Shown: positions 2,537-21,999 of the stretch, one piece after another
Layout: each line of letters opens with the position of its first letter
Numbering within the stretch: the stretch's first letter is position 1
Sequence record: MH221129.1
DNA length: 64,000 nt
Reading direction: 5' to 3' (one strand)
Notes under the pieces: generated by a model
Seen by the model: only the letters and a program-made list of their open reading frames with translations
Told to the model about the DNA's origin: nothing
The model's database searches: none
Position numbers and translations under genes: made by a program

Positions 2537-3212
2537 ACATTGCCGTGTCCTTGACGTCGGTAGTAACGTATTGCGCGAGATAACGAGTGGACTCCTTAAA
2601 GGGGTTCGCTCCATCTCTTTTTATTAACGCAATTGTTTCTTCTGTCAACTCGCTGGTCAACAGACTAGGACGCGTGATGGTAAAAGACGGTATCGGTTTA
2701 GAAAATGCTTTCGCGTGTTCTTTAATCCAGGGGTACCAGTCATACATCACCCAACCATCCCAAGCAGCCGCTAAACGTCCAGGCGTTAGCTCGCTATGCG
2801 AGATGCAAACGATGTCTACTGGAACAGCACTGTAGTACGCCCGCAGGTTCTCCAGAAACTCTTGCCGTTCTTCATCGTCCAAATCCATATACGGCCACAG
2901 GTTAAACGTTAACTGCGGTCTCTCTATGGGCGAGTGCATCTGAATGCTTAGCAGCATCGCATGGATTTCGTTTTTCAACGTCAGTAAGAACTCGGTCGGT
3001 TGCGCATTCTTCAGTGCACGCTTATCGCGCTCTGCAAACCGCTTATCCCATTCCGTTATCCCCACCACTTCCGCCCACGAATCAGTAAACCTTCTTCGAT
3101 AAACTTCCAAATCCAGTTTTTCCAACACGTCAGGCTGCAACACCTCTGCCCACCCCAAACGGGTATCGAACAGTGTGTCGATATCGATTAAGAAACGGCG
3201 TCCTAGTCTCAT
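2490..3212 (-). CDS. Hypothetical protein with an N-terminal DxDT motif (possible HAD-like fold)
   Basis: 240 aa; FLIDIDTLFD near the N-terminus; ATGA overlap with the RNAP fragment gene. Confidence 0.7.
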   Translation of the reverse strand: MRLGRRFLIDIDTLFDTRLGWAEVLQPDVLEKLDLEVYRRRFTDSWAEVVGITEWDKRFAERDKRALKNAQPTEFLLTLKNEIHAMLLSIQMHSPIERPQLTFNLWPYMDLDDEERQEFLENLRAYYSAVPVDIVCISHSELTPGRLAAAWDGWVMYDWYPWIKEHAKAFSKPIPSFTITRPSLLTSELTEETIALIKRDGANPFKESTRYLAQYVTTDVKDTAMFSLRRPPRDDDSQTP

Positions 3213-3877
3213 TCCGGGCGTCCTATGTTGTTACCAATGTGCATGGCTTTAAAGTACGAAGACCATGTACGTGGAGCCTTCGAACTCGTACGCTCTGCAC
3301 CCTCGAGGTTAATACGGCCTTTACCCGTCTGTCTCAGTGACTGGTAGAACGCACGCTGTAATGTGTCGTTACCGCCACGACCCCACAGAAACTCTTGTAG
3401 GGTAGCATCGTGTCCGTCGGAGAACATGATGTATGCTTCCGGGAAAGAGACACCCGAAGCTTTAGATGGGCCTACAACCTGACCAGACAATTTATCGCGC
3501 ACTTTATCGTTCCGCGCTACGGCCATCTTCTTCTCCTGCATCTGCGTCTGACGACGTGCAGGCAGCTGGAAGACTAGATGGGGATAGCGGGTACGTTGTA
3601 GGATACCGGTTTTCGGTTCCGTGAGCCACAGGCGCTGGCATAAGCTCAGTCCCATCGCTTCGCAAATTTTGATGTTGCGCATATGGTCAATTTTGACCTT
3701 ACCGCCAGTCGGGTTGTAAATCGGGATACCATCCCGCAGACGATTAAAGTCGTCGTCTGACATGCTTGAAAAGGCGCGTTTAGCGGCTTCCGCATTAATC
3801 CCGGTCGGGTCAACCAACTTTAAAAAATCGATAGCATAAGCTTCTGCTTTTTTTCTCCGTGCCGGGTCCAATCTCAT
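3209..3877 (-). CDS. Virion RNA polymerase beta subunit, C-terminal fragment (phiKZ gp149-like)
   Basis: RRQTQMQEKKMAVARNDKVRDKLSGQVVGPSKASGVSFPEAYIMFSDGHDATLQEFLWGRGG aligns by eye with the RpoB C-terminus (DDKMHARS..YSLVTQQPLGG..GEMEVWAL.AYGA..TLQE.LT.KSD). Position near uvsX matches phiKZ-like synteny. Confidence 0.75.
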   Translation of the reverse strand: MRLDPARRKKAEAYAIDFLKLVDPTGINAEAAKRAFSSMSDDDFNRLRDGIPIYNPTGGKVKIDHMRNIKICEAMGLSLCQRLWLTEPKTGILQRTRYPHLVFQLPARRQTQMQEKKMAVARNDKVRDKLSGQVVGPSKASGVSFPEAYIMFSDGHDATLQEFLWGRGGNDTLQRAFYQSLRQTGKGRINLEGAERTSSKAPRTWSSYFKAMHIGNNIGRPE

Positions 3878-19211: not shown

Positions 19212-19371
19212 GACGGCAATCCTCGCATTCGCAATATGTTCTGAAAAATGGAAAGTAGTTATCCAACGCAATAAACCATTTGCGGTGACGAGGACAAATA
19301 AAGAACTCGTCTTCAACACTCCAGTAGTGTTTTACTGATAACCACTTAATAGGCAGGGAGGATGTTACCAT
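19180..19371 (-). CDS. Small Cys/His protein (possible Zn-binding)
   Basis: CPRH...CECEDC; ATG 19371 after GGGGA. Confidence 0.55.
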   Translation of the reverse strand: MVTSSLPIKWLSVKHYWSVEDEFFICPRHRKWFIALDNYFPFFRTYCECEDCRREKNDSRNNG

Positions 19372-19556
19372 TTCCCCCATCCCCATGGACTGTGACCGGG
19401 CAGATTAATCCCCACGCAATCCATAGCCGGGTTAGGCTTCATGCTGGTAACTAACCAAGCCTGATGGATACGTTTCTCTTCTTCAGTAGGCGGAAAGTAG
19501 AAGCCGACCAAGCGCCCGTCCTCAATCAATTCAACGACTTCGTGTTCTGTAGTCAT
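19365..19556 (-). CDS. Hypothetical protein
   Basis: 63 aa, TAATG coupling with the upstream gene. Confidence 0.65.
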   Translation of the reverse strand: MTTEHEVVELIEDGRLVGFYFPPTEEEKRIHQAWLVTSMKPNPAMDCVGINLPGHSPWGWGKW

Positions 19557-20098
19557 TAGCTGTTCCTCTTCACCCAGGCTTGCACTGCCGCTTCAAAGCC
19601 TTCGTGTTCGATACCGAGGCGTTTCATTGCTAACATAGTGTTTAGCGCATTCGTAATTTCTTCACGGAAGCGATGGTCATCCATCTTACGCCAAACCTTG
19701 TCAGGACTAATCCCGAACACCTGGAACAGATACGCTTCGCGCAGCATAGCAGTGCGATAATAGCGTGGCTTCATCAGTGCGATTTGAACAACGGGGGTTA
19801 AGTCGAGTAGATGGCAAACGATAGTGGTTGGCGTACCGTTAACTCTATCGCGGCCAAACAGCATGGAATACCAGTTGACGGAACGAAGTATCTCGTCCTT
19901 TTCATCCATCAGGCTACTCATGGCCGGCGAGTCAGCCGATGCCCACCAACTTGACATTGCCGGACGGGTCATACCACGATTCAGCGGTGCGATCGTGTTG
20001 ATGCTATTTAACGGGACGGTTTCAAAGACATGCCGATATTCTTTCGCTGTCTCATCCCAGGCGAATTCAATTTTTTGTTCGCGAATAGCTGTGGTCAT
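19556..20098 (-). CDS. Hypothetical protein
   Basis: 180 aa, SD AGGAG. Confidence 0.75.
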   Translation of the reverse strand: MTTAIREQKIEFAWDETAKEYRHVFETVPLNSINTIAPLNRGMTRPAMSSWWASADSPAMSSLMDEKDEILRSVNWYSMLFGRDRVNGTPTTIVCHLLDLTPVVQIALMKPRYYRTAMLREAYLFQVFGISPDKVWRKMDDHRFREEITNALNTMLAMKRLGIEHEGFEAAVQAWVKRNS

Positions 20099-20109
20099 TC
20101 TAATGCTCC

Positions 20110-20325
20110 TTAGGGTAAAATAGCCTCCCGTTCAAACGGTTGAGGCTCAGGCAACGTACCGAGTGCTGCCTTGATGCAGGTATTTAACGGTGTACCAGAG
20201 AAAGTCACACGACCAATGGTACCGACGTTTACATGTGCACGAACAGGAAGGAATTCCTTCACGCGCTCGTACTCAGCCCAACAGATATCTGTATTTAAAG
20301 CTGAAAACCCTGGGCGGTTAAACAT
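20110..20325 (-). CDS. Small protein containing the EF-Tu N-terminal G1-region motif HVNVGTIG
   Basis: 71 aa, SD GAGGAG; YERVK....[11 protein letters not shown] versus EF-Tu [16 protein letters not shown]. Confidence 0.7.
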   Translation of the reverse strand: [71 protein letters not shown]

Positions 20326-20394
20326 AAATAGCTCTCCTCACGTAAAATTACCCCGCTCATAGTGAGGTAATCTGGTGAGGAGAGCGAGTACGGG

Positions 20395-20889
20395 CTAAGC
20401 TACTTCAGCCCCTACGGCATCAGCCGTTTCAACGTTGGTTTGTACCAACTTGGTGAACTCCAACCACTGCCCATCAGGCGAGACGGTTTTGTTAAAGCCA
20501 CGCGCTGTAAAGAACGCCACGCCAGACTCTTGAGCAGCGTAGATTCCTCCGTATGCGCTGCTGAACTCTTCCCGAGTTTTAAGCACATCGAACAACTGAG
20601 TCATCACTTTGCGACGACGTGCCATTTCAGACACATACATCGAGCGAAACTTCAGTACCCCGCTAATTACACGATACAAACAATAGCCAACGGGGGTGTC
20701 ACCTTCTAAAGCAATCGCCGCACGATTACCAGCCAACAACTTCTCGATGGAGAGCATTGGTACTTCACCCTTCTCGATCTGCAGAACATTACGCTGATGG
20801 TTTAAGAACTTATAATGTAAAGCCAACAGCTGTTTGTTTTGTGCGTCGGTTAAATCAGAAGAGGAGGAAAGAATGACAATTTCGGCCAT
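20395..20889 (-). CDS. GNAT-family N-acetyltransferase
   Basis: PVGYCLY, MYVSEMARRRKVMTQL (motif A variant), GVAFFTARGF. Confidence 0.75.
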   Translation of the reverse strand: MAEIVILSSSSDLTDAQNKQLLALHYKFLNHQRNVLQIEKGEVPMLSIEKLLAGNRAAIALEGDTPVGYCLYRVISGVLKFRSMYVSEMARRRKVMTQLFDVLKTREEFSSAYGGIYAAQESGVAFFTARGFNKTVSPDGQWLEFTKLVQTNVETADAVGAEVA

Positions 20890-21298: not shown

Positions 21299-21400
21299 TT
21301 AAAACCAACCTTGCGTCAATGCAATGATTGCCCCAATACCGAACGATACTAATGATGCCACGACCAGCACCCCGTAAGCTATCGTTCGACCCACAAACAT
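21299..21400 (-). CDS. 33 aa single-TM micro-protein (MFVGRTIAYGVLVVASLVSFGIGAIIALTQGWF)
   Basis: Translated by hand; TAATG coupling to the upstream micro-ORF; not in the ORF track. Confidence 0.65.
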   Translation of the reverse strand: MFVGRTIAYGVLVVASLVSFGIGAIIALTQGWF

Positions 21401-21531
21401 TAAAAAAGCCATGCCGCTAATACCGCCCCTATCCCGCAGATAACCAGCGTAATAATAACATCAGTCCAGGACGCACCCTCGTACGCCCCAGTAGCAATCA
21501 AAACTGCATTAACTGTGTTCACGGTTGTCAT
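21400..21531 (-). CDS. 43 aa single-TM micro-protein (MTTVNTVNAVLIATGAYEGASWTDVIITLVICGIGAVLAAWLF)
   Basis: Translated by hand; SD GAGGG upstream; not in the ORF track. Confidence 0.65.
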   Translation of the reverse strand: MTTVNTVNAVLIATGAYEGASWTDVIITLVICGIGAVLAAWLF

Positions 21532-21715
21532 AGGCCGGGTCCCTCAATAACGGCGGCTGACAGCTTAGACGCCCGAAGTACATCCCTTCAAGGAAGACTA
21601 AGAACATTAAAAACCAAAACGGTGGCGTCGCCCGTGCCAGGAAAATTCCTAGCACCACAACAACGTGCAGGCACACAACCGCACAGAACTTTAATCGTGA
21701 CTTACGTTTTGCCAT
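21509..21715 (-). CDS. Small two-TM membrane protein
   Basis: MAKRKSRLKFCAVVCLHVVVVLGIFLA...; start moved to ATG 21715. Confidence 0.65.
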   Translation of the reverse strand: MAKRKSRLKFCAVVCLHVVVVLGIFLARATPPFWFLMFLVFLEGMYFGRLSCQPPLLRDPAYDNREHS

Positions 21716-21806
21716 GGAAAGCCCAACCTTTGGTTCGGATAATCCAGTTCCACCCGCCACGAATTAAATACAACGCGACACCTGTTAATACAACGCCTTC
21801 AATCAT
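21702..21806 (-). CDS. 34 aa micro-protein (MIEGVVLTGVALYLIRGGWNWIIRTKGWAFHGKT)
   Basis: Translated by hand; SD GGGGG; fills the gap between overlapping neighbours. Confidence 0.6.
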   Translation of the reverse strand: MIEGVVLTGVALYLIRGGWNWIIRTKGWAFHGKT

Positions 21807-21999
21807 GATTGCCCCCATAATCCCGCCACTCGCAACGGCCGTCGAACAAGCGGTCCCTAATCGCCGCTAATCCATAGACAATCGCTGCGAATGTCACGGT
21901 TACACAACAGAAAACTACGTAGCTAATTACGACCAAGAACTTAGCTACGTAGAATAACCAATAAAGCGCTAAGCGCCAACCCTTATGCTGCGTCTGCAT
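21799..21999 (-). CDS. Small membrane protein
   Basis: 66 aa with a long hydrophobic stretch; overlaps the sbcC stop. Confidence 0.6.
   Translation of the reverse strand: MQTQHKGWRLALYWLFYVAKFLVVISYVVFCCVTVTFAAIVYGLAAIRDRLFDGRCEWRDYGGNHD

Follow-up and report, generated by a model that had tools for sequence, protein, structure and literature searches.

Profile comparisons show bacterial EF-Tu to be the source of the central 26 to 30 or so residues of a 71-residue protein encoded by Salmonella jumbo phages; these residues come from its N-terminal segment with strand 1, the P-loop, and helix 1. To this EF-Tu-derived core, the protein adds an N-terminal helix specific to the phages and a tail that varies. 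The stretch of DNA analyzed here, referred to as the window, comprises 64,000 nucleotides of sequence record MH221129.1 and is 100% identical to the Salmonella jumbo phages SPAsTU and STsAS; its next, more distant relatives are the SPN3US-like phages (Seoulvirus) and the Erwinia jumbo phages. In SPAsTU, the mini-protein is MLDJOKPK_00247, annotated as a hypothetical protein. Its sequence is 100% identical in STsAS, and it is the orthologue of SPN3US gp192. The features of the gene and its surroundings are given in Table 1.

Table 1. Positions of the mini-protein gene, its parts, and neighboring features (window coordinates unless another phage is named)
Feature	Position	Strand	Description or basis
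71-aa EF-Tu-derived mini-protein, CDS	20110..20325	-	ATG start; ORF list
EF-Tu-homologous module (EF-Tu residues 11-36: strand 1, remnant of the P-loop, helix 1)	20161..20238	-	Residues 30-55; hhalign and PDB profile
HVNVGTIG	20212..20235	-	Residues 31-38; identical to EF-Tu strand 1
Degenerate P-loop	20191..20214	-	Residues 38-45; GRVTFSGT replacing GHVDHGKT; alignments
N-terminal helix	20248..20292	-	Residues 12-26; C-W-x-E-Y-x-R-V-x-x-F-L; family specific, not EF-Tu-like
Conserved leader hairpin, GNAT-mini-protein junction	20320..20400	-	Outer stem 20331-20385
Shine-Dalgarno AGGAG	20334-20338		In 3' arm of hairpin
GNAT acetyltransferase, 164 aa	20395..20889	-	PHROG 3810 (E = 4e-37); weak Pfam GNAT matches
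Four tiny ORFs (37, 43, 83, and 66 aa)	21299-21999	-	Between the SMC-like gene and the GNAT
180-aa downstream gene	19556..20098	-	PHROG 11720; different gene there in other lineages
63-aa ORF	19365-19556	-	PHROG 26041 (E = 8e-45)
Macro-domain protein, 166 aa	18512-19012	-	NCBIfam NF048014 (E = 2e-29); PADLOC DarG (E = 5.5e-31)
Split ORFs, Erwinia phage Wellington (L028)	3066-3254 and 3172-3471		
Split ORFs, pEa_SNUABM_11 (L029)	3059-3235 and 3165-3494		

An earlier note on this DNA had pointed out an exact copy of the EF-Tu segment HVNVGTIG in a 71-residue ORF that had lost the GKT of the P-loop and lay next to an acetyltransferase gene, and these observations hold. The ORF is present, with the motif at residues 31 to 38; all eight residues are those of E. 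coli TufA residues 12 to 19 (initiator counted), and the downstream valine that was also said to match is in register (G-x-V). GHVDHGKT of EF-Tu is replaced by GRVTFSGT, and the GNAT gene is indeed directly upstream. The upstream "ER.K" that had been counted as part of the match fares less well, as it lies 6 residues out of register with the ERTK of EF-Tu and may be coincidental for that reason; HMMER pairs EFLPVRA with KFERTKP here.

Taken alone, the 71-residue protein is only marginally similar to EF-Tu, with E values of 0.02 to 0.5 against PDB chains and of 0.014 against the NCBIfam EF-Tu models (14 bits, compared to cut-offs of 449 to 522), and a Pfam search with it gave no match. A single long form from an Erwinia phage reaches EF-Tu chains in the PDB at an E value of 5e-5, and a profile of the whole family finds EF-Tu chains only (6e-7 to 2e-5). 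When the family was aligned with E. coli TufA by hhalign, 26 columns were matched with 95% probability and an E value of 3.4e-8, and a profile made only from the long forms gave 96.4% and 1.4e-9; the PDB matches of this long-form profile were also confined to EF-Tu (best E value, 1e-7). The best PDB matches were chains 5i4r_C and 2hcj_A, which are EF-Tu fragments of residues 1 to 44. The long forms of the Erwinia phages (Erskinevirus and Machinavirus; 109 to 110 residues) contain 12 consecutive residues identical to EF-Tu, and the helix-1 pattern of EF-Tu is retained in the mini-protein in both the alignment and the hhalign comparison. The view that the match is too good to be due to chance is thus borne out by the significance of the family profiles against EF-Tu (1e-9 to 3e-8 with hhalign and 1e-7 against the PDB), and the idea of a captured EF-Tu fragment gains support from the 12-residue identity in the intermediate homologues and from profile matches that are to EF-Tu only.

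The region with supported homology corresponds to TufA residues 8 to 37, which in the structure of EF-Tu form strand 1, the P-loop, and helix 1. Past helix 1, further likenesses are visible by eye, with A-A-Q-P-F-D resembling A-A-R-A-F-D of EF-Tu and H-V-E-V-H-H-P resembling H-V-E-Y-D-T-P, but the profile comparisons do not support homology there, even in the long forms, and we do not extend it to this part. Residues 30 to 55 of the mini-protein thus align with TufA residues 11 to 36, with HVNVGTIG identical, while in other respects the two proteins differ greatly: the phage protein has 71 residues versus 394, its GK[ST] is gone, and it has no supported switch I, no G3 to G5, and no domains II and III. 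Two of its parts have no counterpart in EF-Tu, namely the N-terminal 29 residues and the A-L-G-T-L-P cap.

Homologues from ChrisDB, Huxley, Machina, Parshik, pEa_SNUABM_8, and pSal-SNUABM-04 are labeled "putative elongation factor Tu" or "putative GTPase" in GenBank, which would fit a working small GTPase or elongation factor. The sequences already refute this, and we give it virtually no credence. The proteins have 71 to 110 residues compared to 394 in EF-Tu; the G3 (DxxG), G4 (NKxD), and G5 motifs and domains II and III are absent, with the mini-protein ending after helix 1; and GK[ST] is intact in no lineage and is broken differently in each. At this position, most long forms have SRS or SRT, Caitlin has GRS, and Wellingtonvirus has GMS; GKP occurs in one metagenomic lineage and AQS in another, and the short forms have SGT, DDT, or similar. 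Against Pfam GTP_EFTU (PF00009), the long forms score 12 to 15 bits, below the cut-off of 26.5, and the window protein has no match, so the P-loop, the missing G3 to G5 motifs and domains, and the family cut-off all place the protein outside the EF-Tu and translational GTPase families (PF00009 and TIGR00485). Because GK[ST] is destroyed in every lineage, we conclude from these motifs that the mini-protein is not a GTPase or an elongation factor; the GenBank names reflect a resemblance and are wrong as functional names. We also rejected a split GTPase completed by the downstream gene, as this neighbor lacks G motifs and is not the same gene in every lineage. When the EF-Tu protein was searched against the SPAsTU, ChrisDB, and EaH2 genomes, either this gene or nothing was found, with no other EF-Tu-like segment.

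The window protein belongs to PHROG 28329 (E = 8e-36 over residues 1 to 65) and PHROG 12626 (E = 4e-16). Members of these groups, including SPN3US gp192, ChrisDB gp215, Asesino gp213, and pSal-SNUABM-04 gp195, share the genomic position and the leader hairpin of the window gene. The window protein is one of their short forms, and erosion of the P-loop has gone furthest in it; the long forms of the Erwinia phages are nearer to EF-Tu. By tblastn, family members were located in 58 phage records, which without exception belong to jumbo phages of Salmonella, Escherichia, Proteus, or Erwinia; the family is limited to SPN3US-like phages and jumbo phages of Erwinia. Among 1.84 billion representative proteins, an exhaustive profile search gave only about 10 family clusters; the additional members came from contigs of jumbo-phage size with the same gene order, and the lower-ranked matches were genuine pieces of EF-Tu.

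Between lineages, synonymous divergence has reached saturation, and pairwise dN/dS values within the family are 0.08 to 0.3 (0.11 for the window protein versus SPN3US). The eight codons of the motif differ at third positions, both between phage lineages and from tufA. With the motif codons differing synonymously and dN/dS at this level, codon comparisons indicate that purifying selection acts on the protein rather than on the RNA; the same synonymous differences rule out RNA-level mimicry of tuf mRNA. Judged by the saturation of synonymous sites between lineages, the capture of the EF-Tu piece is old. N33, V34, and G38 are invariant in 15 members, with H31, G35, and I37 nearly so; near invariance is also found among the family-specific residues C15, E18, Y19, R21, F25, and L26, and the A-L-G-T-L-P cap after helix 1 is conserved as well. 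The earlier note had been ready to abandon its reading if the motif were not conserved among homologues; it is conserved and under purifying selection. The marginal E values of the window protein alone (0.02 to 0.5) would be consistent with a chance similarity in a spurious ORF or with the remnant of a decaying pseudogene, but the family profiles are significant, the ORF is intact in all lineages with the low dN/dS values given above, and the seemingly broken copies in the SPFM phages are scrambled assemblies. Family profiles and dN/dS together already refute this explanation, which has hardly any probability left.

In the SPFM records concerned (SPFM1, 5 to 10, 14, 15, and 20), short blocks stand in the wrong order and all genes of the region look broken; the description of the SPFM14 record (LR535912.1) reads "XXX". 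The scrambling looks like an artifact of assembly or submission and not like gene decay. Another unusual copy is an 83-residue "hypothetical protein HAY58_003097 [Salmonella enterica]", with a C terminus that diverges after A-L-G. It sits on 241-kb contigs filed as Salmonella enterica, and an SPN3US-like phage genome has thus been deposited inside bacterial assemblies.

A different arrangement is found in Wellingtonvirus, where the family gene has been divided between two ORFs that overlap and use different frames (Table 1). The first carries the N-terminal helix motif and lies behind the conserved hairpin, and the second, with a separate AGGAG and ATG, carries NVGTIGHV and the EF-Tu-like helix. 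This helix reads P-L-T-A-A, which is even nearer to T-L-T-A-A of EF-Tu. GenBank annotates only the second ORF of the pair.

The mini-protein gene is part of a co-directional block that in the window consists of an SMC/SbcC-like gene, tiny hydrophobic ORFs, the GNAT, the mini-protein, the 180-residue and 63-residue proteins, a macro-domain gene, and an SLT endolysin. The order of SMC gene, small ORFs, GNAT, and mini-protein gene, followed by macro domain and endolysin, is common to all lineages. Directly upstream of the mini-protein gene, the GNAT was found in all 13 lineages examined, and the downstream gene varies. The records that carry the two genes are also nearly the same, 61 for the GNAT and 58 for the mini-protein, and the three extra records are Wellingtonviruses, which carry the split gene. 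A tRNA search of the window found none.

Several of the other genes in the block deserve mention in their own right. The four tiny ORFs that separate the SMC-like gene from the GNAT have strongly hydrophobic products that look like transmembrane proteins, and similar ORFs are found at the same place in related phages. The 63-residue ORF is highly conserved in Erskinevirus (Asesino-like phages and EaH2). The macro-domain protein matches the macrodomain of the DarG antitoxin, lacks the C-terminal half of DarG, and has the same position in the block in all related phages. The macrodomain of DarG is a DNA ADP-ribosyl glycohydrolase, and by its sequence similarity the phage protein is a plausible counter to DarT-type DNA ADP-ribosylation.

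The GNAT itself gave a confident AF2 model (pLDDT of 86), and the best Foldseek matches of this model were small protein acetyltransferases, including RimI of E. coli and Salmonella, NatC, NatD, and Ard1. The model shares the fold of RimI and the small N-alpha-acetyltransferases with TM scores of 0.6 to 0.7, which are generic for GNATs, and the sequence identity to the window GNAT is just 11 to 21%. RimI acetylates EF-Tu at its N terminus (PMC9079301), and a link from this modeled similarity to the neighboring GNAT is suggestive, no more. In the acetyl-coenzyme A motif A (residues 91 to 96), SPAsTU has R-R-R-K-V-M and SPN3US has R-R-R-K-T-M, whereas all other lineages have R-x-x-G-x-M; the Seoulvirus branch has swapped the usual G for K.

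The spacer of 66 to 82 nucleotides between the GNAT and the mini-protein gene is occupied by a two-tier hairpin. The 3' arm contains the Shine-Dalgarno sequence, and a U-rich tract and the ATG follow; the tract is invariant, and the ATG lies within it, 6 to 7 nucleotides past the stem. In the window, the minimum free energy of the hairpin is -34.1 kcal/mol (z = -6.1), and folding energies of -30 to -41 kcal/mol were found in 13 of 13 lineages, with compensatory changes at 9 of the 16 consensus pairs. In several lineages, the region of the GNAT stop codon pairs with that of the mini-protein start codon. A covariance model built on the leader locates a single site in each locus, even in the Wellingtonvirus loci left out of its training, and no second site in the 64-kb window; an Rfam search of the leader gave no match. 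From this arrangement we infer that production of the mini-protein is linked to that of the GNAT or held back relative to it, which could come about through translational coupling or through termination or attenuation.

Structure prediction for the mini-protein was of low confidence. The AF2 monomer, made from a shallow alignment of 9 sequences, has a pLDDT of 49 and shows a helix at residues 12 to 25, a short strand pair at about residues 36 to 41, and a helix at residues 46 to 54. The best score in an ESM Atlas feature search was 0.81, which is below the meaningful level. A predicted complex of GNAT and mini-protein scored 0.02 compared to a mark of 0.32, with the partner at a pLDDT of only 35, a result that speaks neither for nor against binding. 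Since it is a piece of a domain that in the AF2 monomer, made from a shallow alignment, has no confident fold alone, the mini-protein probably works bound to a partner.

The explanation that we tentatively prefer, without considering it probable in absolute terms, is that the mini-protein and the RimI-like GNAT encoded immediately upstream work together as a functional pair. The hairpin hides the ribosome-binding site and start region of the mini-protein gene, which would tie or throttle its synthesis relative to that of the GNAT, and the EF-Tu-like piece might then be the bait, regulator, or specificity subunit of an acetyltransferase aimed at the translation apparatus. The constant position of the GNAT in front of differing downstream genes, the near-identical record sets, the conserved and covarying hairpin that is unique to this junction, and the resemblance of the GNAT model to N-alpha-acetyltransferases, including one that acetylates EF-Tu, all point in this direction. 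However, these phages are broadly syntenic, so that adjacency alone is a weak argument, the fold matches of the GNAT are generic, the window GNAT has K for the usual G in motif A, and the hairpin could be a mere terminator or attenuator. Moreover, the family has no invariant lysine and its N terminus (MFN or MLN) is unlike that of EF-Tu, and the mini-protein is therefore no obvious substrate for acetylation.

Other roles have to be weighed against a pairing with the GNAT. The strand-loop-helix of EF-Tu could be an exapted scaffold that now serves as a compact folding or self-assembling element, possibly binding phosphate or nucleic acid, in a role unrelated to EF-Tu or to the GNAT. It would then be understandable that the demonstrable likeness to EF-Tu is confined to some 26 to 30 residues, that the remainder is family specific and equally conserved (C-W-x-E-Y-x-R-V and A-L-G-T-L-P), that the P-loop drifts freely, and that Wellingtonvirus has split the gene in two with a start for each part. 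Such a role is nevertheless doubtful, since strand 1 has stayed almost letter for letter that of EF-Tu despite saturated synonymous divergence, which is tighter than a generic beta-strand needs, and the monomer model, with its shallow alignment, gives no sign of an autonomous fold. We consider it unlikely that the protein is an anti-defense decoy or pseudosubstrate, an imitation of EF-Tu that absorbs or blocks host immunity cutting, sensing, or using EF-Tu (such as Lit, the type IV Thoeris caspase, or Avs7), in the manner of poxvirus K3L. The fragment is host derived and catalytically dead, and selection maintains it; at least three defense systems, one of them from Salmonella, are documented to target EF-Tu or to have it as a component; the accessory block also holds the DarG-like macrodomain, a likely counter-defense gene; and tryptic and caspase cleavage frees an N-terminal EF-Tu piece of about 44 residues, a stretch comparable to the EF-Tu-like part of the phage protein. 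However, the cleavage sites in EF-Tu are G59-I60 for Lit and the positions after R45 and R59 for the type IV Thoeris caspase, and the mini-protein does not present the region with these sites: supported homology ends at EF-Tu residue 37 or so, and the short forms stop before the switch-I loop. In EF-Tu, strand 1 and helix 1 make up the core of the G domain, and the switch-I loop is exposed. The use as a Lit-type decoy that the earlier note had suggested is not favored for this reason, as the residues conserved here belong to the buried core and not to the loop cut by the protease. Avs7 contacts domains II and III of EF-Tu, which the mini-protein lacks, and PADLOC gave no match for the mini-protein or the GNAT.

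The conserved part of the protein is exactly what packs against the remaining G domain in EF-Tu, and the phage piece might accordingly replace the N-terminal segment of host EF-Tu, during folding or after a protease cut, to give a P-loop-dead hybrid that alters or caps EF-Tu. Trypsin-cut EF-Tu keeps its 1-44 piece noncovalently bound, as seen in the PDB entries that were our best matches (5i4r_C and 2hcj_A), and the piece also stays on EF-Tu cut by the caspase. That piece is the same stretch of EF-Tu, and type IV Thoeris cuts at the same arginines, but it is cut from folded EF-Tu and stays bound, whereas the phage protein is made separately and has a dead P-loop. With no second EF-Tu-like piece in the three phage genomes searched, any EF-Tu-type partner would be supplied by the host. 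We find such complementation improbable, as the phage depends on host translation and would be harmed by a dominant-negative EF-Tu, and as intact EF-Tu offers no free slot. A comparison with poxviruses suggests a related possibility. K3L is a truncated viral homologue of host eIF2-alpha and a pseudosubstrate of PKR; like the mini-protein, it is a small viral protein that goes back to the N-terminal portion of a host translation factor and lacks the activity of its parent, but it keeps a whole, autonomously folding domain with an exposed recognition surface, whereas the phage protein is part of a domain and mostly buried core. By this analogy, the mini-protein could be a phage counterpart in which a dead EF-Tu piece engages a handler of the EF-Tu N-terminal segment and protects translation during infection. 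It may do so by swapping into or capping EF-Tu that has been cut in switch I by Lit or the Thoeris caspase, or as a pseudosubstrate of an enzyme directed at EF-Tu. We rate this analogy below a decoy role in general and above complementation. In all, we place the pairing with the GNAT first, followed by the scaffold, the decoy, and then complementation, because the buried core is kept, the cleavage loop and the domains contacted by Avs7 are absent, and the gene has its constant GNAT neighbor and shared leader.

A literature search found no paper on SPN3US gp192 or on the EF-Tu-like protein of the Erwinia jumbo phages, and a search of sequencing runs gave DNA and metagenome runs but none of RNA. 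It is already known that some long forms resemble EF-Tu, which annotators had spotted, but the membership of the short Seoulvirus forms in the same family, the universal loss of GK[ST], and the purifying selection appear to be undescribed, as do the split of the gene in Wellingtonvirus and the leader hairpin.

EF-Tu is among the most abundant and most attacked proteins in the conflict between phages and bacteria, and it is also borrowed by the replicase of Q-beta. Avs7 builds EF-Tu into its complex. In the phages studied here, strand 1 has been kept letter perfect for a very long time while the catalytic residues were discarded, which suggests that some partner still reads the EF-Tu strand-1 segment. 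The mini-protein would also be a natural example of a P-loop strand-loop-helix unit outside a G domain. Since SPN3US has an amber-mutant genetic system (PMC5105663), the function of the protein is directly testable, and once its partner is found, a new means by which phages manipulate or shield translation could come to light.
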